Positions 24,591-44,139 of a stretch of 64,000 bases of DNA are shown here, piece by piece (position 1 is the first letter of the stretch; each line of letters starts with the position of its first letter). This DNA is from Schizochytrium sp. TIO01. Taxonomy: Eukaryota; Protista; Bigyra: Labyrinthulomycetes. The notes under the pieces are model-generated. The model did not search any database. It was given only the letters and a program-made list of their open reading frames with translations, and was not told the DNA's origin. Location: assembly GCA_004764695.1 (NCBI GenBank), contig SMSO01000014.1:491648-555647 (forward strand), in the 5' to 3' direction. The position numbers and the translations under genes are program-made.

Positions 24591-25644
24591 CTATGTATAA
24601 TGCGGTCGCTCTCCAGTTTCCACACGACACAATGGGCATGAGTTTTTCAATCTAAACCAGGCAAATGCACAAGACTTGTGAAAGATGTGAAAGTGACTGC
24701 ACTCAAGCACTACAACAACATCAGTTGGTTGAAAAGTCATCAAGCAAATCGTGCAGTCATGTTGGCGCTCATCGCCAAGAGCTGTTTCACTAAATTGCAT
24801 GGACCGAAGGTTCCGCAACACATTTGGAGGCGCACCTGAAGGCAAGCTCACAACATTGATGAAAGCAAACACACTCATGGTTACTACAAACTTTGTAAGC
24901 ATAGGAAACATGAGCATCATCCAAAGGTTTGCAGGGGTCTCCTGATCTGGATTATTTGGGGCTCCACATGCGTTTGGAGAAAACTTCTCGCCAAGCGCGA
25001 TTAATAGGAAAAATCCAAGACAGCACACAATGTACTGTAATCTGTTGAGGTTCCAATTAAAATTCCATAGAGAGTGTTCTTGAATAAATGCGAAGCGTTC
25101 CACTAAAGAAGTCGCCGAATCTCTATCCAACAATACCTGTAGACCCCAGGCCGCAAAAATGACTGTAAGTATAACATGAAGAAGTTGCGTCATGGTTGTG
25201 AGGAAGAGCAGACCCCAGTGAAGGGTGAAGAGGACATCAAATGTGCAGCCCTCGTGTATTGGATCTACAAGACTTGGCGGAGGGTTTAGTCTTAGCACTT
25301 GAATACATTTTGGTACAACCATGCCCATGAAGGTAGTCCACGAGCATGCCATGATAAAAATCAAAAGAATTCCCAAGTGGTAATCATGTCTACCTCACAC
25401 CAACAAATGTACATACGTGCTCAACATAACCATTCCAATTCATCACATGTTAACACGACATTCTCACTCACTCAGTTAGTCAATGCCGTCTTCACCTGGG
25501 CTCCTTGCTCTCCGAGTTGGTTCTGCTTGGTTGTTGTCACACTATACACGGTCAACTAGGGAGGATCGAACCGATTCTGATATCCTGGGCTCGGACGTAC
25601 CTGAGTAGTGCTGACACCGACCATGGTTGGTCTCCAGCCTCCAT
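24591..25644 (-). CDS. Multi-pass membrane RING-H2 E3 ubiquitin ligase; probable intron 25390..25600
   Basis: C-terminal CTICL...LECSHFHIFHKSC..WF...SCPLCR plus several hydrophobic segments. A GTACGT donor and TAG acceptor join MEAGDQPWSVSALLR to HDYHLGILL in frame. Confidence 0.8.
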
Positions 25645-26010: not shown

Positions 26011-29000
26011 CCGCAACAATACCACTTAGGTCTGTGTCGTTTATCCTCCAGCAGGATGCTACAGGATGATAGCCAAATACAATCACGGAACCTTTTGTTT
26101 ATTAAAAAGAAAAGAAATAAAAAGAATCATACGTTGGCTGTGGTACTAGTAGATCGCTACTGCTAGCTTGCACGCGATCATTCGTGACGGTACGAGACGA
26201 AATACGAGAGAGGTTTGTTTAATGATCGGTGCAGAACATGGCTTTGGGGATAAAGTCCTGTTCACGAACATTCTGGTCTGAGCAAACTGCTGGGTTTACA
26301 AAGGCCTCTCACAGGCTTTGTTCAAGTTGCATTAACTTTTAAACAAACACATTCTTCGTTGTCTGAAAAAACATTGGGTTGGAACAACTGAAAGAAAACG
26401 AGGGAAACGAATATGAATTATGATTCTTCATTTGACAATTTGTAGTAGCCGGGTGAGGAACCAAAGCGAGGAAGCAATGAAGGCAGTTTTTAACCTTCCT
26501 TGAGCTTTCATAAAGGCGCGAAAGAATAAAATTTGTCACAATACCTTTCATTTGGTAACAATGAAGAAACGCATTTTTGTGTGAGAGCTTCAGAAAGAGC
26601 ACTTATGTGTACTGAAGATAGAGAGAGGGTGCACACTATTTGTTTTGAGGTGATGGTCTCACAAGTATAGAGGCTTCGCGTCACGAAGATGATTCATTTG
26701 TCTATCACAGTCGCTGTCAGTGGAACTGATGATGGCAGGCTATCAGAATGAAAAAAATTACGGACTATAGACGAAAATATTTTTAAATGACGTTGTATGG
26801 TAGTATCGCATTAGGTTGTGTAGTGGAGCTTACAGATGTAGTCCAGAACAGGGATGGCGAACTCAGAAGACAGTGAAGGAGGGGGATATTTTTATCATTG
26901 GGGTTTTGAATCTGTATAGAGGCAGTGTAAATGTGTGGTGCTGAGCAGCAGAGGTTACTTTATTTGAGGTTAGGTGTATATTACTTCAATAGGTCGGTAT
27001 GGTCGCTTTGTCTTCATATTTGATTGTAAACAATCAGTGTTAGCGAAATATTGACTCTACCTATCGATGGCCACATAAAGCATGTCGTAAAGTCAATATT
27101 TCGCTCACATTGATTGTATACAATCATGTGTTTACAAGCCCAAAACGTCAACCTCGTTATTAATAAGAGTTGCAATATCCAATCCTGCCTAGTTCTAGAA
27201 AAGAATATATCCGTTGTTACAGAGTGTCGTATTTTTGACATTCATGTAGATGACGTTAAGAATGTGGGTGTTAACAGCAAGACGGATATACCTAGATGTG
27301 TGGGTAAAAATGTATATCTAATGAGTATAAGATAGGTTGATACTTAATTCCATGGAGTAAAAACAATATTTGGGCTTTATATATAAGTCTGTTACTTACG
27401 ATATTCTAGTAAGTACTGTAAATATAATTTTCTAAATCTCTAGTCATCAATTGCAAATTGTCGTCGTACATAAGTTCTATACAGATACCTCGTCAGTACA
27501 CACGTACATTTTCCTCTACACGTATGTACAATCATTGACCTTGTTCTTCTTTTGAATTAACGTTTACTTGAACAGGTTGGGAGAGGTAGAATACCGGCGT
27601 CGTGTGACGTCTTGAGATTGCTACTCGGTCAATTCCGTCCAACAGATAGGACGACATGAGTGTCGCTTTGTATAATTCAAAATAACTACGTTTCTCGTTG
27701 TTCTGACGTCATGACTCACCCAATCCATCTCAGTTTTTAGATATACATATGCGATATTCAAGTAGAACGAGACTAAACAAAAGAAAACGAAGTTAAGTTT
27801 ATATAACTCCATCCGTCCAAATACCCACCCATTCATTCCTTCATTCCACTGATTTCAACTAATACACCCGAACTCTATTCATACCAATCTCCAATATCGC
27901 TTCGTCAGATGTATATACGAAGTAGCATCGATATGATCTTTATAATTTACGTTAATGTCTTTATTATTTTGATTAAGCGAATCATTAAATTCTGGACCAC
28001 TACCAGCATCAACCTACTAAAGCCTATATCAACCTACTGAAACCTATATCAATGTACATTTTTCAATGCACAGCTTTTCAGATTCGGTCAGACTTTGTAG
28101 CCTACGAACTCATCTATTCTACTCCAGTGCAATGACCAGGAATAGCGAGGAACAACGATTGATTGGCAATAACAGAAAAAATTAAATTAAAAAAGCAAAA
28201 AAAAAAAAGCAAATAAGCAACCAAACCAACGACCCACCACAGAAAGCAACTAAAAAAGCAACCAAAAAGCAACCAAAAAACCAATCAGAGTTAGGCAAAC
28301 CAGCCAATTCGGGATCGGTCAAACAGCCTGACAGAAGCCTCACCGCGTGGCTGGTTGTTATAACTAGAGGTGGTTGGTTAGTCAGACTGGGTCGGTCTGC
28401 CATTGTGCATTAAAAGGCATGTGACTTTGTGCTCATTTTTACTGTCACATTGCGGCACCCCCTTTAAACCCTGCTATTGTTGCTTCTCTACATTTATCAC
28501 CAATACCCTCTTCTTCTTCTATGTCATGTAGGTGTAGGTTTTCAAAGAACAATAAGAAGAAGGCAATAGCTCCATCAGTTGCATCGCACTGCAAAAGTCG
28601 AATGGCACTCTACGTACTTCCTTTCAATCTTTTTTGTTCGCCAGAATGCAAGCCCAAATCGAATGTGTCATCCTCTGGGTATTTCAAAGTATAAATCTAC
28701 CGTCTCAATTCATAATTAATACATAGGTATACCTACTCATATACCGTCGCTTCAATTCACTTCATTTCGCTATCACAAAAAAATCGATTTAAGTCGTCAC
28801 TCCTCCAGTGTTTCACCTTGTCCACTATAATCACAGCTTGTCAGCAATGGAGCCTTGTTATATAAATGTTTACAATATAATATTATGAATGTTGACAATA
28901 GCTTATTCTATATAGTCTTATGGTTTTGGCTAATAACAAGGTGTATATCTTCTTAGTCAAAACCTCTAGGAGTTGTCATAGGACACGTTATAGCTATCAG

Positions 29001-30200
29001 TATTGTTTTCTTAGTGGAAACCTCCAGGGGAGACTAAGACTGAGAACAGCTCCGAGTAGCTCTGTTTGCTTCTTCTTCGACTAGGCAGCAGAGGGAGGAG
29101 CCTTTTAAAATGAACGTTCTGTCGATGTTTAGAACCTTCATTCAACTTTGAGGCGCCACACTAAAGCTATCATATAAAAGTTATAGCATTATTGGCATCA
29201 TTGTTGGCAAATAAGTACATTCATTCTTACATAACATGTTTTAAAATGAAGTTATAAATGTTTGTTAAAGAAAGAAGAGAAAACGGAAAAGAATGGAAAG
29301 TTACATCTCTCTATGTATTTTAGTGATCAATTATTTTTTATCTAAATAGTTCTCCAACAATGAGTTTGTTCAGATTAGTGTATTCGGCCTTATGAGCGAT
29401 CTTTGAGGCGATGAAATTGCTCTTGATAGTTTCTACTTGATATACAGGTACTCTTTAGCTTACAATAGGTGCTGTTTCGTTAGTAAATATGACCGATTCA
29501 CTTTTAGCACTAAAAGTTTTCATCAATATGAAGCTCTTCCAATTTGCCAAGTTTATTTGCTGTAACTCCCCAAAATAGACTTTGACTTGTTCGAGTTCTC
29601 ATACGTCCAAACAAACTTCGCTGGGCGACGCATAGCGGAGGCGTAGTGAACGAACCTCCGAACCTCCGTCGCAAGCAACCTTCAAACAAACTTCTCGATT
29701 TTCCTGAGCCCCTTCTCTTAAACCGCACTTTCTTCTTCAGAGAGTTAGTTCTACTTCTCTCGAATGTTCTCTTACCAGGCCGGCTTTCGCCGAGGGAAAA
29801 AACCGACGAGGCATCAGATAGGTCCAGCAAACCCAGAACGAAGCCTCGTCGTCCAAACCTTCAAGTACAAGGACGATGATTCTCTCAAACAAGCTGCACT
29901 TCATATACAGATCAACAGACAGGTAGTCTCCACCCTCGCATCAACGCACTCTACAAAAGGAAGGGATGGGGGTGGGTTGTTTACTTATTAAAGATGGATG
30001 GATGGATAGATGGATGGAGAGGAGGCCTTTTCAGCCGAATCGGAGTGCTCTTGCTGCTAGGTTACAGAGGTGCGGCTTCAGCGGACCACAGGCGCGCAAT
30101 GCATGCGGCGAACGGCTGAGTCTGCAAAACTCATACCTCCTGAGCCTAGGTAGCGGCTTTCCAAGGTCAAAGGGCGACGGTCTGGGTTGAAACGTGGCTT

Positions 30201-31337
30201 CTATCGTTGCCACTGGCGCTGCTGCGAGCGTGATTGAGCGCCTGGTGGAAAGCGGCTATAGCTCCTTTTTATAGGCGCATCATCAATGCTGCTGAGACCC
30301 CTGCTTGGCTTGGAGAAAACCAGGATTTCCTGAGCTTGCTTCGTATCAACAGACCCGTCCTTGTAGATAACGTTCACCACCAGCTGGACTTTTGTTGTTC
30401 CTGCATCGCCCTGGAGCAACGCATAGTTCTTTCGTTGCAGCGTGAGGTCGATGAAAACTTCTCGGGTACTCGAATCTTCAGGCGATTGTACCTCGTGGAA
30501 CTGACTCTTCTTCTCGCTGAAGACGCGGTGTTGCTCTTCCTGCATAGGGATCTGAGGGGCAGAGCCAGAGCCAGCAATCCAAACGATGATGTCATGGAGT
30601 ATACCATCCTTGACTATGCGATGGTTGTGGGGGCTGTTAGGTTTCTGCACACCTGTGCTGAGGCGGGCTGAACCACTGGCATAGATCTCGATTTTATCGA
30701 GTCCACCTCCACGCGAGGGTTCAACTTCAACGCGCATCAAGGCCCTGCGCAGTTCGCAGCGCAGGGTGTAGTAAAAGGGTGCTTCATATGGTTGGATGCG
30801 GGCCTGACTCGTCCCATTCTCGGGGGAAGTACGCATGGCATCGTGATGTACAGACACATTCTCCAATTGGGAGCTGCCAGAGAGGAGCTCTCCATCCTCT
30901 TCACGGGGGTATTCTGTTGCAAGCTCATCGGCGGCGTCTCCCAGTTCGGGGTCGAAAGAGACTTCTGAAAGTACAAGCTCAAGATCTGGGAATAGAACCA
31001 CATTAGAATTGCTTTGGTGGACTTCCTTGTTCAAGTCTGACAGCGATTCCATGCTGTTCGAGCGTGTGCGGGCCGACTTCCAAGCTGAAGGGTGTTCATC
31101 GTTAGGGGAGCTGCAGGTACGTTTGGCAGCTCTAGTAGATGTCGGAGCAGCATTGGGGGGAAAAGGGACTTCTTGAAAAGGAGGCTGGTCAGGTAACAGG
31201 TTATTATCATCCATGTCGTCAAAGCACTGCAGGTCAAGCTTCTCATCCATGTCGTCAAAGCACTGCAGGTCAAGCTTCTCGTTATCGTAGTCGCTATCAG
31301 GAGGGTTGCTGTCGATGTCTTGTTCATTCGTCGGCAT
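30201..31337 (-). CDS. Putative transcription factor, paralogue 1: acidic disordered N-terminus plus novel C-terminal beta-rich domain ending ILVFSKP
   Basis: Intact 378-aa ORF whose C-terminal ~185 aa align almost without gaps to 42250..44139. It has a basic KRTCS/KSARTRS patch, a 36-bp tandem duplication (EKLDLQCFDDMD x2) and a 5'UTR intron at 31377..31579. The TF function is inferred. Confidence 0.65.
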   Translation of the reverse strand: MPTNEQDIDSNPPDSDYDNEKLDLQCFDDMDEKLDLQCFDDMDDNNLLPDQPPFQEVPFPPNAAPTSTRAAKRTCSSPNDEHPSAWKSARTRSNSMESLSDLNKEVHQSNSNVVLFPDLELVLSEVSFDPELGDAADELATEYPREEDGELLSGSSQLENVSVHHDAMRTSPENGTSQARIQPYEAPFYYTLRCELRRALMRVEVEPSRGGGLDKIEIYASGSARLSTGVQKPNSPHNHRIVKDGILHDIIVWIAGSGSAPQIPMQEEQHRVFSEKKSQFHEVQSPEDSSTREVFIDLTLQRKNYALLQGDAGTTKVQLVVNVIYKDGSVDTKQAQEILVFSKPSRGLSSIDDAPIKRSYSRFPPGAQSRSQQRQWQR

Positions 31338-31719
31338 AGTCGCAGCAGTTTTGGGCTTGGATATCTTCGCGCCTTACTATAGAAGCTACTAGTACGGCGG
31401 CGGTTTGCCGTTGTATTAGTACAAACTGGGCTGCAGTGCTTTGGTTGCTTGAGTTTGGAGTTTGAGGTTTGGCATCTGCTGCACTCGGCCATAGTTGCAA
31501 GGATTCTGCTGTGGCAAAGCTTTACTCAGTGTGCAGTGTTGCAGAGAGCAGAGAGGAGAGCGACCGCGACTTGGCGTACAGAGCATTAGGGGTTTGTGGC
31601 CTCAAAGTTCCTGCTGCCCTCTCTTTTGAAGGTGAAAAGTGATTCACGATTAATGTTTACATAGCTTCTGTTAGTCTATCTACTGCTTTAAGTGCTCATA
31701 AGCTGACAGAAAGAAACTT

Positions 31720-33250
31720 CGCGGAAGCGTTGAGCGCTTGAGAGCGCGTCTGAAGGTAGCGATGTAGACGACTACGCAAGCGCAGAGAGGCGTCTGTTCC
31801 TGGAGCTTAGGCATCTGTTCCTGGAGCTTTCCTTCGCCGGACGCTAGAAGGATGCTCTGTTGGTCTGTTTGTCCGAGCTTACTTACTGTTTAACCACTCT
31901 CAAAAATTTCTTCTTTTCTTCGGCTAGAAAGATAAGAGGCGGATCCGTCTGTGGCTTGGAGAGTTAATGCGCGAAAGCGGCCGCGACGTGGGTCTGAAGT
32001 GGAAGTGGCTGCATTCCGCAAAGCTGCGGGGCATCGTGCCAAGTCGACACTTGCGCGGGGCGATCTGAATCGATCTGAGTCGGTCTGGGCGGCCTGTTTG
32101 TTTGTCTCTGCAAGCGAAAAAAGAGGTCGGCAGCTAGTGGCTAATTTCTTTTATTTATTTCTTTAATATTCGATTGGTAGAAGTAGCACACTTTGGCCGA
32201 GGCTGTAGCAGAAGTGAGTGGGTGGAGAAATAAGCACGGCCTCGTGCCCTCTCGGAGAAACTTTGAATGCTTCAAATTTGGAAAAGAAGGGTTACAACAG
32301 AAAATTGAATGACTAAAAAAAAAGAAAAAGAGAAGAATCTCTTGGTAATCTATTTAAAAATTAAAAGGGCTTTAAAAGATTAAAAATAGAAAGAAGAAGG
32401 AAAGAAAGAAAGGAAGATAAACATGTGTTGTAACGTAAACATCTCTGTGCAGAATATAAATAAGGTGATTATGGAGAAAAGCGCGGAAGAGTTGAGCACT
32501 TTAGAGCGTGTGAAGGTAGCGATGTAGACGACTACGCAAGCGCAAAGAGGCGCCCGCGCCGGTTGGTGTCTGTTCCTGGAGCTTTCCTTCAGCGCCGCCG
32601 GACGCTAGAAGGATGCTCTGTTGGTCTGTTTGTCCGAGCTCACTTACTGTTTAGCTAAGGACCTGCTGTCAGGTTTCTTCTTTTCTTCTGGAAATCCTAA
32701 TTCTTTTCTTCTAGAAAGATAAGAGGTGGATCCGTCTGTGGCTTTGAGAGTTCATTCGCTTGGAGAGCCGATGTGGATCTTAAGTGGCTGCGTCACGCGA
32801 ATCGCGCCAAGTCGACACTTGGCGAGGCGACCTGAGTCGATCAGAGTCAGTCTGGGAGGCCTGTTTGTTGGTTGGTCTGTGCTGCGGCAGCTATTTTTTT
32901 TTTTTTTTTAAATGTTTTCTCCTTTTTTGAAGTGTTTGATTGCTTGACACTCTTGGCCATTAAAATAAAAGCCGCCTTAGTCCTATTTTTCTCTATTGCC
33001 ATTTCTGTATCTCGCTTCTTCTTTTTCTTTTGCATTTATAAATCACCAAGAAATTCTTCTCTTCATTTAAAATTCGATTGATTAATTTGTGTTTTTACCC
33101 TTCTTCTCCAAAGTTTCCCCGAGAGGATCGTGTCACGAGACCCTGCTTCTTTCTCTGGCCAAGAGCGTTATTTGTTAAGAAGGAGAAAAGAAAGGAAGAT
33201 AAACATGTGTTCTAGCGGACTCTGTGCAAAATATAAAAATAAGTCGGTTT
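31720..33250. repeat. Tandem duplication of a ~750-bp upstream non-coding block (copies ~31720-32470 and ~32475-33250; third diverged copy ~39990-40760)
   Basis: gaaggtagcgatgtagacgactacgcaagcgca and cggacgctagaaggatgctctgttggtctgtttgtccgagct each occur twice; ggaagataaac.tgtgtt occurs three times. Confidence 0.85.
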
Positions 33251-33494
33251 GACTCCTAAATGAAAAGGCTTCTGATCACTTCGACCTCTAAAAAGCTCGC
33301 TCATCTCTCAAATACTATTGATTTTTGTTTGTTTGTTGAAATTATTAAAAGTTTTAAAGAAGATTCTTCTGTAAGAGTTGAAAGACAGAGGAGTCTGTTC
33401 ATTCACACAACCATTGAGAAAGAAGCTTTTCTGCTGGCGAGGATGAACACAGTATCTATGTGCCTTGAGCAGCTTAGTCAATGTTGGCTCAGAG

Positions 33495-34169
33495 CTATCT
33501 GATAACGCTGACAGCCGAGTCGCTGTCAATTTCTCCAGGGCAGTCGAGTAGGCCGCTTCCAGAGATGCTTCGACGAATGAGGTCACCAAGGTCGTCGTAG
33601 GAGTCGGATGCGTTGACGAGCAGGCGCCCGTCTTGCTCCGTGGCGGGGTAATAGCCAGTATGCAGACCTTCGTGCGTGGTACACACCTCCACAATGGGGT
33701 GCGAGACCACACTGTCACAGCATGTTCGCGCTCGCTTTGGAGCACTCTCGTAGCGATGGTCTTCACGAACAGAAGAAGGAGAAGAAGAAGAAGAAGAAGT
33801 GGAGGCTTCAACAGAAGCACGGCGATGCTCGTCTCCGTGGAGGTGGTGGCGAGAAGCGTGGGCACCCAGAAAAGCTGAGGTTGAGGAGGAGGAAGGTTCA
33901 TCGGAATCGAAGAAGACTGAGTCGAAAGAAAGGGTCCTCTGACGTTTTATCGATTCCAATTTTTCAAGGTTGGAAGGCGAAAGACAAGACAACTCGGCCG
34001 GGTAGCTGGTGGCAGCGCTGTCGGCGTCGATGATGCCGGAGTAGGCGTCGCCAATGCTGGAGGAAGAGGAGGAGTCTGGAGAAAGGGGGACAGGAATGGC
34101 CTCGAAATGTGCAGACAGAGCTCCCTCAAAAACAGATTGAATCATCTCGTTGACCGCGGCATCGTCCAT
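33495..34169 (-). CDS. Acidic Ser-rich disordered protein (partner gene) with KRQRTLS/KRART motifs; 5'UTR intron 34218..34340
   Basis: 224-aa ORF from ATG 34169 with GC-rich coding-like composition. A GTAAGG...ACTAAT...TATAG intron lies upstream, and a degenerate copy sits at about 40900-41150. Confidence 0.6.
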   Translation of the reverse strand: MDDAAVNEMIQSVFEGALSAHFEAIPVPLSPDSSSSSSIGDAYSGIIDADSAATSYPAELSCLSPSNLEKLESIKRQRTLSFDSVFFDSDEPSSSSTSAFLGAHASRHHLHGDEHRRASVEASTSSSSSSPSSVREDHRYESAPKRARTCCDSVVSHPIVEVCTTHEGLHTGYYPATEQDGRLLVNASDSYDDLGDLIRRSISGSGLLDCPGEIDSDSAVSVIR

Positions 34170-34831
34170 TGGCACACACAGTCGAGGCTGCTTATTGTTG
34201 CTGCTGCTGATGGTGTACTATAATTGGTTTATCGCAAGAGACGATTGGAATTGTTGTTGATGTTGCTTGTCATACGACATTAGTTATGGACTGAGCTTGC
34301 TCGCTTTTGTGAACTGAGTTTCTACATTTGTTCTCCTTACCTTGACAAGAAAGAACCTTAGTTTGGGTTTTGCTTGCTTGCTTGCTCGGCACTCGGATTT
34401 AGTATTTGGTCAGAGCAATAAGTATACCGCTGATTTCCGATGCACGTGGGATCTTAAAGGCGAGCAAACATTGGCGAACATGGCTTTCTATATCTTTTGG
34501 ATACTCTAGCTAGAGATCATTATAATATCTATATTAGTTTTGGTTTTTAATTTAAACTAAATGAAAGGGTTTTATTTTCATTCAACATGCAAAGTGAAAA
34601 CAACAAACTACAAGCAGTCCTATGCATCGGAGAAACCATGACAGCGTTTTGCCGACTTAACTTTTTGTTTTATAAACAAAACAAAAGAAAACAAAAAGAA
34701 AGGAAAAGAGATTTCATTTTACAGTTATTATACATCTAATTATTTATTTGTGATTCAGTGGCAGAGCTTTGGCAGAGGTTCCGGTTTCCGCAACCCAACC
34801 TATCTTCAAATCTGCGGAATGTTCCTCACTC

Positions 34832-35430
<599 letters not shown>

Positions 35431-37944
35431 GGCTTTGCTATTAAGGGGCCATCCATCCAAATGCCACGAAGGAGAATACTAAATTGACAAGGGCATTCTT
35501 GGAGTCAATGACGCCAAAAGAAAATGGGTAACTCTACTCGCTAGGGGGTTATATTCTATGGAAATTCTAGGGCGCAGCCCCAGAATTGTGAAGCGTGCAA
35601 AAAGAATAGGCCCTCTAAATTGCTCCCGAAATGCGAGGTTAGATACAGTGTTTTTTGTTTTGTTAAATTGGTATTTTCTATTTTGTTAAAAAAAATATAA
35701 TAAGGAATCAAAGAATATTATATTGAATTGTAATCCTCTTCTTCACCATCTTCGCTCTGGTTGGTCTCTTTATTAATAAAACTCAGGCTGGTGCTTCGAA
35801 TAGAATAGTTTGGTTTATCCTCACGCTGTTCATCTTCATCACCAATGAAACAAGTGTCATCTATTCAATCCTGGGAGCTTGTATTCACTTGCCTTTGAAC
35901 TTTTGGAGCTTCCTCTTCCTTTATGGGTGGTGGGGTTGATCTGCTTGTTCTGTGTAGGCATCTTTTCCATAAAGTGAGCTCGCAGAGCATTGTGCACGAT
36001 GTCACCTATGCGAGTGAAATCTTTATCTAAGCCCTTCTTATTAGGGAGCCAACGGGAAATTCAAGCAATATGTTTATCGAATAAGTCGATACAGTGTTAT
36101 GGGGGAAAGTAGAGTTTTCTCTCTCTCTTTAAATTTTGCCTCAGAATGGCATTTACCCAGAACAAATTAAACCATAGCTAAGCTAGTCGTTTTCGAGAGA
36201 CACACTTGGAAAAACTTCGATCGACAGTCTTTTCCAGCATGATAAAGATGTTGTATTGCCCATGTCATAACAAGCTCTGTATATAGCTTACTCTTATGAG
36301 AATCAGACATCAACCCAGGATCATGATTTTCCTTGACAGGTAAGGTAAGGTAATATGCAGGTGTATATTATATTTGAGCCTTAAGAACCCCAAGGAATTA
36401 CAATAATGGAATGTTATTCTTTGAAGCGCCCATTTCAGGTCAATGTATCTTTGGCAATAAACTGGATATAGGAATACCATTCGCGTCTCGCATAGTCCCT
36501 GACCTAGGGAGTCAAAATCTTTTTGGCCTAGAGGGATATTACAAATTATTGGAGTATGTATGTGTGAGGACTTTTTGCAAAGGAGCTTGTCAGGTGTAGC
36601 TATCTCATCAGCCTGGTGCTTCCGTTTTGGATTTCTATCTGAGAATTTAAAGTATTCGAAGAATAGCTCTCAGCCGTAGCACTGCCTCAGTTACCTACTG
36701 CAATTAGAACGAAAACTCGCTGACAAAAACTTAGCTGATTATAAAAAGTCTCTTTCCTACAGAACGGGCCACAAAGGTCGCCCAGTCAACCTTGAAGTAC
36801 AAGCATTGATATGGGTGCAAAGTCCGCTGCCGGTTGTACGGCATTGATTGGTATGTGAATTACAAAAATATAATACTTCTAAAAGATACGAGCACGGAAA
36901 TGTAGCGTGATTCAAATGATCGTAGTAGACGGCAATTGACAGCGAAAGTTGACAGCGAAAGAGGAAAAGCACAGTTTGCAAGCAGCGCATTCTTCAAGAA
37001 CAAAGTCTAGCTACCTAGAGGGTTTTGCTGTTGAAATCAGAGAGATTGCTAATGGAAGTAAAGAGTTTTACTCTAATCCGTGCAATTTTTATAGGTCCCT
37101 GAAAGTCACCTAAATCGCAGGTGGGGGTGGACAACCCATTTCGAGAGTCGTACCCCTCGAACTTCAAAGTTACCCCATTTGGGGATTCTCTGACGGCTCA
37201 TTGAAATCTTGAAATTGTATTAGAAGATATGTATATGTAGTTCTTCTTCATACTTACTATTGTTTTAGTTATACCCTTCTATCTCGTGGTATCCTAAAGT
37301 TAATGTTCTGTTCTGTTGAATATTTATTCTTATGAAAAGAACGCAAGTAATCTTGTATTGTAGATAAGTTTATTTAGTTCTACTTTACATCTATTAGTAT
37401 TTAGCTATATACATCTAGCTCATATTAGCTCGCAAGTAGACTTGACTTGTTCGAGTTCCCCTACGCAAAAACAAACTTCACCAAGATGGATGAGTGAGGT
37501 GATGCTTAGTAGAGGCGTGGTGAACGAACCTTCTGTCGCACGCAAACTTCAAACCAACTTCTCAAATTCTCCGCACCCCACCTTCGAACTACACTTTCTT
37601 AGGCAGCGAATCAGGTTCTACTTCTCTAGATTGTTCGCTCGCCAGATTGGCTTTCACTATGGGAAAAAAGCGACAAGGCGTCCAAAAGGTCGAGTAAACC
37701 CAGAGCCAAACCCTCAAGTACAAGGACGATGATTCTCTCAAACAAACAAGCTGCACTTCATATACAGATCAACAGGCAGGTAGTCTCCACCCTCGCATCA
37801 ACGCACTCTACAAAAGGAAGGGGTGGGGGTGGGTTGTTTATTTGTTAAAGATGGATGGATGGATGGATAGATAGATGGAGGAAGAGGCTCTTTCGTCCGA
37901 ATCGGAATGCTTGCAAGGTCAAAGGGCGACGGTCTGGGTTGAAG

Positions 37945-39599
37945 CGTTGCCGCTGGTGCTGCTGCAAGCGTGATGGAACGCCTGGTGGAAAGTGGCTGCA
38001 GCTTCTCTTATAGGTGTCTCACCAATGCTGCTAAGACCCCTGCTCGGCTTGGAGAAAACCGGGATTTCCTGAGCTTGCTTTGTATCAACCGTCCTTGTAG
38101 ATAACGTTCACCACCAGCTGGACTTTTGTTGTTCCTGCATCGCCCTGGCGCAACGCAAAGTTCTTTCGTTGCAGCGTGAGGTCAATGAAAACGTATCGGG
38201 TACTCAAATCTCCAGGCGAGCGCACCTCGTGGAACTAACTCTTCTTCTCGCTGAGGATGCGGTGTTCCTCCTGCTGCATGGGGATCTGAGGCGCAGCGCC
38301 AGAGCCGGCAATCCAAAGCATGCTGTCTTCGAGTACACCATCGCTTAGAATGAGCCCACCTCCATGCGAGGGTTCAACTTCAACGCTTATCAAGGCCCTG
38401 CGCAGTTCGCAGCGCAGGGTGTAGTAAAAGGGTGCTTCATATGCATGAATGCGGGCCTGGTTCGTCCCATTCTCGGGGGAAGTACGCACGGCATCGTGTA
38501 AACATGGGAAAGACACATTCTCCCATTGGGAGCTGCCAGAGAGGAGCTCTCCAATCTCATCGGGGGGGTCTTCTGCAATCTCATTGGCGGCGGCGTCTCC
38601 CAGTTCGGGGTCGAAAGAGAGTTCTGCAGTCTCGACGGCGGCATGCAAGTCATGAAAGAGTTCTGCGGTCTCATTGGCGGCGGCGTCTCCCAGTTCGAGG
38701 TCGAAAGAGAGTTCTGCAGGCTCGATGACGGCATGGAAGCCATGAAAGAGTTCTGGGGTCTCATCGGCGGCGGCGTCTCCCAGTTCGGGGTCGAAAGAGA
38801 GTTCTGCAGGCTCGACGGCGGCATGCAAGTCATGAAAGAGTTCTGCGGTCTCATTGGCGGCGGCGTCTCCCAGTTCGAGGTCGAAAGAGAGTTCTGCAGG
38901 CTCGATGACGGCATGAAAGCCATGAAAGAGTTCTGGGGTCTCATCGGCGGCGGCGTCTCCCAGTTCGGGGTCGAAAGAGAGTTCTGCAGGCTCGACGGCG
39001 GCATGCAAGTCATGAAAGAGTTCTGCGGTCTCATTGGCGGCGGCGTCTCCCAGTTCGGGGTCGAAAGAGAGTTCTGCAGGCTCGACGGCGGCATGCAAGT
39101 CGTAAGTAAGCTCTGCAATCTCATCGGCGGCATTAGCGGCATCGGTGGCATCTCTCATTGGGGAGTCGCACAAACATGCACCATCTACGGTCTGCCAATT
39201 CACATCACAATTGATTAGGTGATCTCCGATGGAGTCTGGCAGCGTTTCCATGCTGTTCGAGCGCGTGCGGGCCAACTTCCAAGCTGAAGGGTTAGGGTGT
39301 TCATCGTTAGGGGAGCTGCAGGTACGTTTGGCAGCTCGAGTAGATGTCGGAGCAGCATTAAGTTGGGAGCAAAGAGGGGCATGCTGACCATCTTTAGCGC
39401 TGTCCAAAGAGCATGAAGTGGAGGGCTGACTGGAATCGATCTTCACATCTTTGTCTCCTTTTAGAGTAAGACACAGGCTGCCGCTGTCAGCGTAGTCGCT
39501 ATGAGGAGTGTTGCTCTCAATGTCTTGCACACTCGTCGGCACAGTCTCAGTAGTGTTGGGCTGCGGTCTTGCGTTCTTGGACATGTCATGCTTAGGCAT
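37945..39599 (-). pseudogene. TF-like paralogue 2 with a disrupted C-terminal domain (may still encode a 454-aa truncated protein)
   Basis: Compared with paralogue 1: an in-frame deletion of about 27 codons after GGGL, a CAG->TAG stop after EKKS (38235-38237) and a 5-nt deletion near 38090. Homology continues through VFSKP to about 37945. The 5'UTR intron (39612..39826) is retained. Confidence 0.75.
38581..39120 (-). repeat. Six tandem 90-bp coding repeats (30 aa: HAA/VVEPAELSFDP/LELGDAAAN/DETA/PELFHD/G) with 180-bp higher-order alternation
   Basis: tcat(t/c)ggcggcggcgtctcccagttcg recurs at 38581, 38671, 38761, 38851, 38941 and 39031. Confidence 0.95.
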
Positions 39600-40899
39600 C
39601 TGCGCGACTTACTGTATAAAAGCTACCAGTGCGGCGGCGGTTTGCCGTTGTACTAGTACAGACTGAGCTATGATGCTTTGGTTTGTTGAGTTTGGGGTTT
39701 GGGGTTTGGGTTTTTTGGTTTGATGTCTGCACTCGACGCCATAGTCGAAATGAACCTGCCGCGGCGAGGCCGCAGGCAAGCCCCATTCAGTGTCGCAGAG
39801 AGGAGACCGAGAGCGCCTGGGCTTACAGAGCAGTAGGCGGTTTTATGCTCGAAGTATTTACAGATACAGATACATTGTGTCTCTCTTTTCGAGAGCGGCA
39901 GCGGCATATAAAGCACTGGTCTGTTCTATTACCTTTTGCCTTAGCTGCTGTTAGTCTCTCTATGTAACGTATAAGTACTCGTAAAGTGGTCCTTAAAGGT
40001 TCCGGGAAGGAACCGAGGAATTGAGAGCGAAAGATCGCTACGAAGGCGCGCGATGTGCAGGACGATGATTCGCCTCTGGGCAAATGCAGAGAGGCGCCCA
40101 CCCCAAGAGGTTTCCAGCGCTGCCGGACGGCTAAGAAGGAAGCTTTGTCTATCTGTCCGCGGATCCATCAGTCGTTCTTCCTGTTTAGCTACTAGCTAGC
40201 TAGCTGCTGAGCGCTCTCGTCGCGCTCTCGCTTCATTCTTCTTCCCCTTGATATTCCGACTGTGGAGCCAGCCTTTGGAGCGAACAGCGATGCGATTCTT
40301 GAGCGGCTAAGCTTCTTGCGCCAGGCCGCAAGGGGGCGATCGAAAGGCTGGTGGCTCGACGTGTCTGCGGGCGTCGGCCTGTCGGTCTGTTTGTTGTCTG
40401 CGCAAGTGAAGTTGGTGGGCTAGCTCACTGTTTTTTTTTTGTTTTTTGTTTTTTTTTGTTCGAAGAAAGCAACCCTCTCGGGGAAACTCTTTAGAATTGG
40501 AGTGTAAAGTTGAATCATTAAATTAAATAAGAAAGTATTTTGAATTAAAAAGAGCTTTCAAAGGTTTGATTTATTTAATTTAAATTAAAAAAAGAAAAGC
40601 GAAGAAGGTGAAAGGTACATGAATGGAGGCTTTTGTTGAAGCTTCAGAAGAAAATATCATTCAACGAGATATTATTATATTTTGTTGAGCAGAAGAAAAG
40701 CAAGGAAGATAAACTTGTGTTGTAACGTAAACTTGGGCGCTCTGAGCAAAAAGAAAAGAGAAGTTGTTTTGCCTCCATAGAATGCTTCTTTCTGATCGCT
40801 TTGAACATTAAAAAGCTCATCTATAATAAAAGATTCTTTAATATCAGAAGATAACTCCGTAAGATGAAAGATGAGTTTGTTCACTATAAAAGAATATTG

Positions 40900-41150
40900 T
40901 GGCGAGAACTGAGAAGTATGCGCTTGAGCAACCTGGTTAACTGAAGATGACGCTGCCAGCGCTGCCATTGTCGATTACTTCGGGGCAATTAATTGAGAAG
41001 GTCGCTTTCAGGCATGGTTCGACGAACGACGTGGCTCCTAAAAGATGGTCGCAGGAGTTGGGGCGTTGGTTGAATCATTTCGTTATCCACGGCATCGTCT
41101 ATTGACACGCACAGCAAAGGCTGATTAATCTTGCTGTTAATGCTGCAATC
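40900..41150 (-). pseudogene. Internally deleted, degenerate remnant of the partner gene 33495..34169
   Basis: ttgaatcatttcgttatccacggcatcgtctattgacacgcacag matches 34137-34181. ttcgacgaacga and ggtcgcaggagt match about 33570-33605. About 500 bp between these matches is missing and the start ATG is lost. Confidence 0.7.
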
Positions 41151-41957
41151 TTGCTGTTAATGTTGCAATATACATTTTAAATTATATATTAAAAAATACA
41201 CATTTAAATTTAATTCAAGGCATTGATTATGTTCAAACAATGTGTTTAAAGAAGCATTTAGAAAAAGAAAACTAAAAAAAGAAAAACTGTTTCTAAAACA
41301 TTGTATTTAAAGAAGAAGAAATACAGATAAAATTCCTCTTTATATTTAAGAAGACAAGCCTGGAAGACAAGAAAAGAAGATGAAAAAACAAAAACATAAA
41401 CAACTTTAAAGTGTACTAGTTCGAAAAGAAAAGAAAGCAAGATTGTTTCAATGCTGATTATTATATATCTACTAGTATTGCATATTTGATTGATTGTTTT
41501 GACCTATAAAAATTGAGTTACTGAGTAACGCTTATGATATCTGAAGAGACCCTCTTCGCCCATCCATCTACAGCTAAAGCTCGAGCCTGGCGGGCATCAG
41601 CGGAAGAGAGCCGTGGAAGACAAGAAAAGAAAAGAAGTATTCAGAGGTTGTATGTCTTTTCCTGGCAGAGGGGTAGCAAACGTTCCGGGGTAGCAAACGT
41701 TCCTCATTCGATCGGTAATGATAAGATGAACCGCAACACAACATAGATATTAAATAGCCTTCCCCTAAAGGCACCATGGTGAACGAAGGCGATATCTCTC
41801 AATATTTTTATATCTTGCAGCTGTACCTTCAAGCGATGCTTGCGGCTTCTATAGCTCAGGCTGTGAGGAAAGAGTAGATTTCTAAAAAACGAGACTTCGA
41901 AGAGTGTATACAATACCTCCTTTGATTGCATTTAATTTGAAAAGGTGTGCTCTATAC

Positions 41958-41976
41958 GATTAGGTAGGCACATATA

Positions 41977-42008
<32 letters not shown>

Positions 42009-42150
42009 ATATATTATATGAGAGCGAATGATTAGGTAGGCACATATAATATATATAATTATATATATATATATATATATGAGAGCGAATGATTAGGTAG
42101 GCACATATAATATATATAATATATATATATATATAATATGAGAGCGAATG
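41958..42150. repeat. Three-copy minisatellite GATTAGGTAGGCACATATAAT-(AT)n-GAGAGCGAAT just upstream of paralogue 3
   Basis: Three ~60-70-bp units with variable AT tracts, ending 100 bp before ATG 42250. Confidence 0.9.
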
Positions 42151-42249
42151 GTTTTTTAAAGTAGAAACTCAAGAAGCCCAAACCAAATCTGAAACTCAAG
42201 AAAGCTCAAGCAAAGGGAGAATAAGCCCACTCATTGTTCAAAGTAAACC

Positions 42250-44139
42250 ATGGGCGATGAACTCTACTGTAGTAATACTTGGGATTTAGATCTTCTTGAC
42301 GGATATCCTTTACAATCCACCTCCGATGACAATCATGATTCGGGTTGGATTAGTAACATTCCTTTGGTACCGACCACTCCCAAAGACGACAATCTTTCTG
42401 AAGAGCTTCTTCTAGTATCATGCTGTACTTCTTCCCCGCCAGCCCCCATTCACAATCACAAGAATCTTGGGAACCTTCTCAGGTCTTCTCAGGGTTTGGA
42501 ATCCAGTCGTCCTGTTACCCCCACCTTCGATTCTTCCTGTGCTTCGGATCCGGGATTGTCTAATGTCATTCATGGTCCGCAAGAACATCAAAACGATCCC
42601 CCATCTCCTCTTCCCGAACCCGTCGCTGCTGCTAGTCCTGCGCTTACACTTGTTTGCAACAACACCAAGCGTAAGAGCGCGAGCATTCATTGTGGCTTGG
42701 AGAACCAGAGTCACATTACGCTCAAGCAGCCCCGCTCAAGCTTAGAAAGAAGCTCTGTAGGCGTCGACAAGGCTCATCAGAATACAGAAAATGAGGAGAG
42801 CGATGAAGTTACCACAAGTAAATGTGTTATAGGAAGTGATTCCCAGGATTTTGTAGGCCCTGACCATGACCAGGATGGGACTGCCCGAAGCTACGATGAG
42901 GAAAGCATTGGCCAAGATAAAAGTGCTTTAAGCTGCGAAGCGGAAGACGATTTCCACAAAGATCTAGGACTGGCTCTAAGTTGTGTTCGCTTGCCTGACT
43001 CTCCTTCCAATGGCGGGCACCAGGTATCCCCAGAATCCAAGCAAACTTCCATTGCCTTGACTGATGAGTCTACGGTATCCACAGACACAAGCTCTCTTGC
43101 ATGGGAAGACGCAGGCTCTCTTGCAAACGTCCATGCAAGTAATCATAATAGCAGCAATGCTACTTCAGCGAATACTCACTTACGCATGGTAGCTTCGTAT
43201 GTGCACGTCAGCTATCAAAACCATACGCCTGCAGGAACTGTCTCTGATCGCCTTCAACCTTGCCGTGAGAAAGTTCAAAATCCTTCATGCAATAGCCTTG
43301 AAATAGATGAAGCCATCGTGAACGGCAACATCGATGATGAGTGTAGCCCCAAGACCCTGTCTGCTTGTTCCACTGCTGCTTGTTCCACATCCTCCACTTC
43401 CTCCACGGCGTCTAGCACATTCTTCTCGAGTCCATGCGAAAACGTTTCGTATCCTCAGACTAGCAATCCCAAGGTTGCTCATGTCTTCAACTCTGTTGGC
43501 TCGTTGCAATGTACAAGAGCGTTATTCAGTTCAGCCTATGTCGAAACGTATATGACACCCTTTTACTACGCACAGAAAAGGGGACTGCGCAGAGCTTTCT
43601 TACGCATGGATGTGAATGGTTTGCGTGGAGGTGGACTCAAGAAGATTGTAGTCAAAGCTGAAGCCTTCGTTCGCCTCAGCACCTTCAAGAAGGTTGCAAA
43701 TTGTAAGCAAAAACACAATCACACTAAGGAAGGAGCCCTTCAAGACGAAATGCATTGGGAAGTTGGTCCTTGTCTTGAGCCGTATAGACGTAACCAGACG
43801 AGGATCCACGGCATCCTGCTGGAGAAGAAGAGCGAGTTTCACAATGTGCCGCACACTCAACACACCCATTTGCACTCGGTCTTTATGAACCTCACATTGG
43901 AACGCCAGAACTTTTCATTGCTGCTGGATCAGGGAGTGACCGAGGTCCACTTGAAGGTATGTGCCATCTACAACGATGGCACAAAGGATATCGTCCCTGC
44001 ACAAACGATTCCGGTCTTCTCGAAGCCACACTGCGGGCTCCATGGAATCAAGTCAGAACCCTTTAATGAAGCCTCAAAAAAATTTCACGCTGAGTTAGAG
44101 ATGGCCAAGGCACACGCGCGCGGCGAAAGCTTTGCTTGA
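42250..44139 (+). CDS. Putative transcription factor, paralogue 3: long Ser/Asp-rich N-terminus plus the same C-terminal domain ending IPVFSKP
   Basis: Intact 629-aa ORF sharing PFYY, LRRA, RGGGL.KI, RLST, EKKS.FH, VF..LTL.R.N, IY.DG and AQ.I.VFSKP..GL with paralogue 1; it has an NLS-like TKRKS. Confidence 0.65.
   Translation: MGDELYCSNTWDLDLLDGYPLQSTSDDNHDSGWISNIPLVPTTPKDDNLSEELLLVSCCTSSPPAPIHNHKNLGNLLRSSQGLESSRPVTPTFDSSCASDPGLSNVIHGPQEHQNDPPSPLPEPVAAASPALTLVCNNTKRKSASIHCGLENQSHITLKQPRSSLERSSVGVDKAHQNTENEESDEVTTSKCVIGSDSQDFVGPDHDQDGTARSYDEESIGQDKSALSCEAEDDFHKDLGLALSCVRLPDSPSNGGHQVSPESKQTSIALTDESTVSTDTSSLAWEDAGSLANVHASNHNSSNATSANTHLRMVASYVHVSYQNHTPAGTVSDRLQPCREKVQNPSCNSLEIDEAIVNGNIDDECSPKTLSACSTAACSTSSTSSTASSTFFSSPCENVSYPQTSNPKVAHVFNSVGSLQCTRALFSSAYVETYMTPFYYAQKRGLRRAFLRMDVNGLRGGGLKKIVVKAEAFVRLSTFKKVANCKQKHNHTKEGALQDEMHWEVGPCLEPYRRNQTRIHGILLEKKSEFHNVPHTQHTHLHSVFMNLTLERQNFSLLLDQGVTEVHLKVCAIYNDGTKDIVPAQTIPVFSKPHCGLHGIKSEPFNEASKKFHAELEMAKAHARGESFA

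Follow-up and report, generated by a model that had tools for sequence, protein, structure and literature searches.

A three-gene cluster in Schizochytrium sp. TIO01 encodes an orphan protein family with a predicted Ig-like domain and a possible role in transcription

The stretch of Schizochytrium sp. TIO01 DNA analysed here (the window; 64,000 nucleotides of contig SMSO01000014.1, contig positions 491648-555647) carries three related genes, called genes 1, 2 and 3 below, which are grouped in a single 14-kb cluster. An initial annotation had pointed to three such stretches, and all of them are present. Together they define a family that is real, orphan and fast-evolving, whose C-terminal domain is Ig-like by prediction, which is transcribed, and which is matched only by sequences of Aurantiochytrium limacinum.

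Genes 1 and 3 share a C-terminal domain. Gene 1 (30201-31337, minus strand) is an open reading frame (ORF) of 378 amino acids with an acidic N-terminus at residues 1-176 and the shared domain at residues ~177-345 and beyond, whereas gene 3 (42250-44139, plus strand), an ORF of 629 amino acids, has an N-terminus of residues 1-426 followed by the domain and a tail at residues ~427-629. BLASTP aligns residues 177-363 of gene 1 with residues 427-612 of gene 3, with 76 of 187 positions identical (41%), one gap and an E-value of 2e-40, a level of sequence similarity far beyond chance. The same program aligns nothing between the two N-termini. Both observations agree with the initial annotation, which had described a common domain of ~185 amino acids, aligned almost without gaps, behind N-termini that could not be aligned. 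A protein identical to gene 3 is found in a public assembly (P0005).

Conservation extends about 25 residues past the VFSKP motif into a helix-like tail with the pattern P-(I/F)-x-E-A-x-x-x-F-x-x-A. Gene 3 has this tail, as do the final remnant of gene 2 and P0007, a public transcript of the gene 1 type (MMETSP0958) that is full-length and encodes 393 aa. The corresponding tail of gene 1 (30170-30271, minus strand) is readable in a shifted frame only, where it matches the family profile with an E-value of 0.003; what displaces it is a single additional A, relative to gene 2 and P0007, in the A5 run at 30266-30270. Judging from these sequences, the extra A would be either a real, strain-specific indel or an assembly homopolymer error. 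The annotated stop of gene 1 at 30201 may be an artefact of such an error or the product of a genuine strain-specific frameshift.

Gene 2 (37922-39599, minus strand) duplicates gene 1 in tandem and has degenerated. The copied unit, which comprises gene 1 with ~450 bp of its 3' flank and ~270 bp of its 5' flank (29748-31608), is repeated at 37615-39855 with 77-98% identity, and the two domains share ~90% identity at the DNA level. Three lesions separate the copy from an intact gene: an 81-nt in-frame deletion with its junction near 38352/38353, a CAG-to-TAG stop at 38235-38237, and the loss of 5 nt near 38089, after which the final part continues in a different frame. As a result of the TAG, the 454-aa ORF at 38235-39599 ends prematurely, and the pieces beyond it survive as remnants on the same strand (38088-38225 and 37922-38086). 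Gene 2 also encodes an acidic repeat (38571-39101, minus strand) in which an in-frame 90-nt (30-aa) unit with the motif ELSFDPELGDAA occurs in 5.9 copies with 92% matches.

The public proteins that match the cluster come from MMETSP/EukProt samples labelled Aurantiochytrium (MMETSP0958 and MMETSP0961) and from Logan assemblies. These matches place the genome with A. limacinum or a very close relative of it, among the thraustochytrid stramenopiles. Public transcripts exist for genes 1 and 2, and gene 3 is represented by contigs of unknown library type only. Since the gene 2-type transcripts P0002-P0004 have the same stop and the same 81-nt deletion as the genome, the truncation is genuine and gene 2 is a transcribed gene. 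In P0002-P0004 the acidic 30-aa unit occurs once or twice, compared with 5.9 times in the genome, a difference that may reflect variation among strains or collapse during short-read assembly. Gene 2 is, in sum, a recent tandem copy of gene 1 that is decaying or truncated and still transcribed. Two transcripts are mosaics: P0007 is gene 1-like in its N-terminus and first domain half and resembles the gene 2 remnant in its tail, and P0001, from the MMETSP data of A. limacinum, joins a gene 1-like N-terminus to the truncated domain of gene 2. Such mosaics suggest that the paralogues have undergone gene conversion, that a second haplotype or strain is involved, or that the transcript assembly is chimeric.

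The N-termini are strongly acidic, as had been annotated, with net charges of -29 (gene 1), -64 (gene 2) and -32 (gene 3), and that of gene 3 is also rich in Ser, Thr and Pro. The N-terminus of gene 1 includes a 36-nt repeat in 2.1 copies (31207-31280). Within these regions, acidic-hydrophobic motifs such as LDLQCFDDMD (gene 1), ELSFDPELGD (genes 1 and 2) and WDLDLLDGY (gene 3) may, by analogy, be compared with those of acidic activation domains. The domains themselves have net charges of +1 and +9.

Genome-wide protein and profile searches of the 64-Mb, 37-contig assembly identified genes 1, 2 and 3 as the only copies. When the gene 3 domain was compared by phmmer with 1.84 billion cluster representatives, the search returned gene 3 itself and one further match, P0006, a six-fold methyltransferase-like protein that we rejected as spurious, its score being inflated by internal repeats. 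Similarly, word-indexed searches of 5.8 billion proteins, performed with gene 1 and with the family profile at E-values up to 1, recovered only the family's own A. limacinum sequences. The database searched includes the proteome of Hondaea fermentalgiana, a related thraustochytrid, as an unrelated query showed, so the absence of the family from Hondaea is informative within the length limits of the search tool. Because protein and profile searches found only the family's own sequences, the family is either lineage-restricted or diverged beyond recognition.

A 1039-aa protein encoded elsewhere in the genome (contig C13, 2381388-2384507) was also tried as a relative and proved unrelated, with an hhalign probability of 0.2% and different registers in two runs. 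It combines a beta-rich middle with a C-terminal region that is conserved; Pfam gave no match, and the only sequences it retrieved were itself and its Hondaea fermentalgiana orthologue P0010 (58% identity over the searched region).

Between the domains of genes 1 and 3 we obtained a dN of 0.55 and a dS of 1.56, giving a dN/dS of ~0.35, a value that is rough because the silent sites are saturated; within this limit it bears out the earlier suggestion of a folded domain under constraint. For genes 1 and 2 the ratio is 0.6-0.9.

Structure prediction with AlphaFold2 gave two models that agree on one fold. Model 1, built from a four-sequence alignment for the gene 1 domain (30243-30830, minus strand; 196 aa), has nine predicted strands, a predicted local distance difference test score (pLDDT) of 63.4 and a predicted template modelling score (pTM) of 0.61. 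Model 2, built from a six-sequence alignment for the gene 3 domain (43522-44058, plus strand; 179 aa), has eight predicted strands, a pLDDT of 63.8 and a pTM of 0.63, with four of its five models above 60. Both are all-beta, as the alternating strand pattern had led the initial annotation to expect, and when mapped through the sequence alignment the eight strands of gene 3 fall in register with eight of the nine of gene 1. Each model, within the limits of a shallow alignment, forms a two-sheet Greek-key sandwich of seven to nine strands, and the domain is accordingly described here as a predicted Ig-like beta sandwich. Strand parity in the models suggests that the conserved PFYY loop, KNY..LL loop and SKP tail lie at the same end of this sandwich, and that the conserved RGGG loop and KDG turn would lie at the end opposite the PFYY loop.

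Structural comparison placed these models among beta sandwiches in general. When the models were compared, without Foldseek, with 48,161 representatives of the PDB, Z reached at most 7.7, the level seen for models without a true relative, and the top rows were all Ig-like or other beta sandwiches. A second look at the Foldseek top 1000 gave V-set domains (CTLA-4 and nanobodies) at Z values of 8.4 and 8.8, with ~113 of 117 target residues superposed at ~3.1 Å. The top 50 rows of four VIA-align lists were likewise filled by Ig-like or other beta sandwiches that are not transcription factors, mostly V-set domains. The Foldseek list of model 2 was led by arrestin-like N lobes, namely those of Spo0M, TXNIP/VDUP-1 and ARRDC3, with E-values of 3e-3 to 1e-2 and template modelling (TM) scores of 0.3-0.36; we set this candidate aside, as the TM scores are low, the E-values weak and the matches confined to model 2, and the family has a single domain without a second lobe. 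In the VIA-align and Foldseek comparisons, none of p53, CSL, STAT and NDT80, four of the structures that the initial annotation had named, stood out, and neither did Rel. At the level of these models, kinship with a particular transcription factor family is unsupported by fold comparison.

Comparison with known families yielded two weak hints of a DNA-binding family. Whether whole proteins, domains or half-domains were scanned, Pfam matches stayed below threshold, and searches of PDB sequences with profiles and with P0007 gave nothing significant. The only Pfam match of P0007 is to LAG1-DNAbind (PF09271), with an E-value of 0.025 and 15.7 bits, where residues 295-355 align with positions 89-148 of the 152 in the profile; the C-terminal half of gene 1 matches positions 77-148 of the same profile with an E-value of 0.073 and 14.2 bits. 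The register is sensible, since the domain terminates where the profile does, and a six-frame search of the genome found no other LAG1-DNAbind match. The CSL-like ending proposed in the initial annotation is thus echoed by a signal in P0007 and gene 1 that stays at noise level.

A feature search of the ESM Atlas with the P0007 domain placed DG1062_N (PF28397) first, with scores of 0.92 (194 of 256 features shared) and 0.90 for clusters of haptophyte and oomycete proteins of 181-214 aa. Further neighbours were LAG1 (0.86), the DNA-binding domain (DBD) of SPT23/MGA2 (0.81), p53 (0.81), fungal cbf11 (0.76) and the COE1 DBD (0.76); LAG1, SPT23/MGA2, p53 and COE1 are all families of DNA-binding domains with an Ig fold. 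According to the calibration of this search, which does not extend to parts of proteins, a first match that scores 0.92 and shares more than 170 features is true in more cases than not. The Pfam copy that we searched was without PF28397, a family included in Pfam 38.1. No family in that copy claims the domain, in agreement with the earlier view that it could not be assigned; because DG1062_N is the closest neighbour of the gene 1-type domain in the language-model search, calling the family undescribed is perhaps too strong.

The cluster is situated among ordinary cellular genes, which Pfam identifies as encoding a RING-finger protein (24591-25376), a G-patch protein, a major facilitator superfamily (MFS) transporter and RINT1; two further flanking genes, SZT2 and PA2G4 (from ~48341), carry labels from the first reading of the sequence only. 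The region from ~25.4 to 48 kb of the window is gene-poor, with coding islands of 50-58% GC separated by spacers of 27-42% GC. A 226-aa ORF (33495-34175, minus strand) that separates genes 1 and 2 is rich in Ser and acidic residues and is GC-rich like a genuine coding island; Pfam does not recognise it, and it does not resemble the family of genes 1-3. The divergent spacer between genes 2 and 3 measures 2.65 kb and contains, directly upstream of the start of gene 3, AT-dinucleotide runs and a 61-bp tandem unit (41958-42150). A long (GATA)n microsatellite of 148 units occupies 34832-35429, and similar arrays occur at other sites in the genome. At ~26800-27000 lies a dispersed repeat of ~180 bp with more than 40 copies (69-77% identity) on many contigs, some of them near contig ends, which is possibly a small non-autonomous element.

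Taken together, we consider a lineage-specific nuclear transcription factor of the p53/Rel/CSL structural class to be the best single explanation of the family, with a probability of roughly 0.4. Under this explanation, each protein would consist of a long, very acidic and probably disordered N-terminus, a C-terminal Ig-like sandwich of ~170 residues and a short, conserved, helix-like tail. The sandwich would bind DNA through the end that carries the PFYY loop, the KNY..LL loop and the VFSKP tail, and the acidic-hydrophobic motifs of the N-terminus would act as activation regions. Nuclear location, DNA binding and activation are thus properties that we infer for the family proteins. The evidence that we count in favour of this explanation includes the homology of the domains, the agreement of the two AlphaFold2 models, the V-set matches, the alignment with the end of LAG1-DNAbind and the ESM Atlas neighbours, together with the grouping of PFYY, KNY..LL and SKP at one end of the sandwich, the acidic N-termini, and the location of the genes in a gene-poor stretch with long AT-rich spacers.

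Several observations weigh against it. Just four to six near-redundant sequences underlie the models, whose pLDDT is only ~64 and whose highest Z values equal or only slightly exceed those expected in the absence of a true relative. In the four VIA-align lists, p53, Rel, CSL, STAT, NDT80 and velvet are absent from the top 50; only the Foldseek list of model 1 includes p53 (rank 31) and velvet VosA (rank 6), with TM scores of ~0.3 and root-mean-square deviations (rmsd) of 10-15 Å. The LAG1-DNAbind scores fall under the Pfam gathering score of 25 bits and are no better than spurious matches such as Med16_N (E-value 0.004), neither gene 3 nor the full gene 1 domain matches this profile, and the signal is not independent, because the same motif prompted the first idea of a CSL relationship. 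The ESM Atlas search with the gene 3 domain gave no usable match. With respect to charge and location, the domain of gene 1 is nearly neutral, and neither a K-K/R-x-K/R nor a bipartite nuclear localization signal (NLS) pattern was found in the family proteins, contrary to the basic NLS-like patch that had been annotated. Finally, the substitution ratios of 0.35 to 0.9 describe a domain that, at the sequence level, is constrained yet fast-evolving. Of the lineage-specific Ig-fold transcription factor originally proposed, what stands is the constrained, folded domain, the predicted Ig-like fold, the acidity of the N-termini and the restriction of matches to A. limacinum sequences; no specific structural likeness to p53, CSL, STAT, NDT80 or Rel accompanies them, and the proposal counts as a plausible lead.

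A more elaborate version of this explanation, which we regard as doubtful, adds a history: an Ig-like DNA-binding domain of the p53/Rel/CSL class, of ~185 residues, would have arisen, or diverged beyond recognition by hidden Markov models (HMMs), in one thraustochytrid lineage; each of two old paralogues would have joined it to an acidic activation region of its own, giving Aurantiochytrium a transcription factor family found nowhere else, in which duplication and decay continue.

Among the rival explanations, the strongest, a serious though tentative one, holds that the Ig-like sandwich is a protein-binding module and the proteins are acidic adaptors or chaperones, either histone or basic-protein chaperones after the pattern of ASF1 and nucleoplasmin, or arrestin-like adaptors. 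It would account for the fact that generic V-set domains and other binding domains of the Ig-like kind rank highest among the structural matches, for the position of Spo0M, TXNIP/VDUP-1 and ARRDC3 at the start of the model 2 Foldseek list, and for N-terminal net charges (-29 to -64) that exceed what an activation region needs, and it is consistent with the lack of an NLS pattern and of strong positive charge in the domain. The TM scores of the arrestin lobes (only 0.3-0.36) nevertheless speak against a true arrestin relationship, as do, for the rival as a whole, the absence of Pfam matches to the ASF1, nucleoplasmin or arrestin families and the fact that the named language-model neighbours are DNA-binding domains and not chaperones.

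We consider it unlikely that the genes represent a young, fast-evolving orphan family with little or no conserved molecular function, arisen or diverged within the Aurantiochytrium lineage and now partly decaying. The restriction to three copies in one 14-kb cluster, the lack of homologues among billions of proteins despite the presence of the Hondaea fermentalgiana proteome, the three lesions of gene 2, the frameshifted tail of gene 1 in the assembly, the dN/dS of 0.6-0.9 between genes 1 and 2 and the differing repeat numbers of genome and public transcripts are all compatible with such drift. However, genes 1 and 3 have retained 41% identity over 187 residues despite saturated silent sites (dS ~1.6, dN/dS ~0.35), both keep long open frames, public transcripts exist for genes 1 and 2, and the two models converge on one fold. 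An origin from a virus or mobile element resident in the host is highly improbable: the orphan distribution, the AT-rich, gene-poor setting, the short dispersed repeat nearby and the mirusvirus-like elements that Aurantiochytrium carries according to PMC12606086 would fit it, but Foldseek against predicted viral structures gave nothing significant (best E-value 2.5e-3, TM score 0.36), no terminal repeats, integrase ORFs or transposase ORFs were found in the cluster, and the flanking genes are ordinary cellular ones.

Industry uses thraustochytrids to produce omega-3 oils, and hardly any regulators of these organisms have been described. If the transcription factor explanation is true, the family, private to its lineage, would offer a target for strain engineering and an example of Ig-fold DNA-binding domains diversifying outside animals and fungi. 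Should the domain not bind DNA, the cluster would still be a compact case of a species-restricted folded domain undergoing duplication, repeat expansion and decay. What the analysis delivers is a clearly delimited orphan family and a hypothesis that can be tested; it does not establish a new mechanism.

Of known systems, both models superpose best on V-set domains such as CTLA-4 and camelid VHH (Z 8.4-8.8 over ~113 of the 117 target residues, with an rmsd of 3.0-3.3 Å). Sequence identity is 4-11%, however, and the strands of the family are much longer (11-19 residues) in a domain of ~170 residues as opposed to ~115. The family also has neither a signal peptide nor a disulphide pattern, its proteins are presumably cytoplasmic or nuclear and have acidic tails, and the likeness, as modelled, is one of fold level only. 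The p53-like domains, represented by p53, SPT23/MGA2, COE1 and velvet, have in common with the family an Ig-like sandwich of 150-200 residues and language-model scores of 0.76-0.81, which serve as leads only, as no significant sequence or structure match accompanies them; Pfam gave no match to this class, in which Rel, STAT, NDT80, Runt and T-box were also considered. DG1062_N, named after the Dictyostelium developmental gene 1062, resembles the family in language-model features and in length, a likeness that comes without an alignment or E-value; HMMER searches, in contrast, found no such relative, and our literature search found no paper on DG1062_N/PF28397.

CSL consists of Rel-like, beta-trefoil and TIG domains, whereas no family member matches BTD (PF09270) or TIG, the family domain sits at the C-terminus behind an acidic region, and it leaves the N-terminal two thirds of the LAG1-DNAbind profile unmatched. 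No CSL chain appears in the top 50 of the four VIA-align lists or, through rank 50, of two Foldseek PDB lists, which is weak negative evidence because the models are of modest confidence. What the two have in common is a beta sandwich of similar size that ends with two strands and an aligned hydrophobic-x-V-x-SKP-S-(K/R) motif. The PFYY/SKP end of the family domain, if it is a functional surface, would recall the N-terminal loop and C-terminal linker that Rel and CSL domains employ, and in CSL the SKP ending leads into the linker that contacts DNA.

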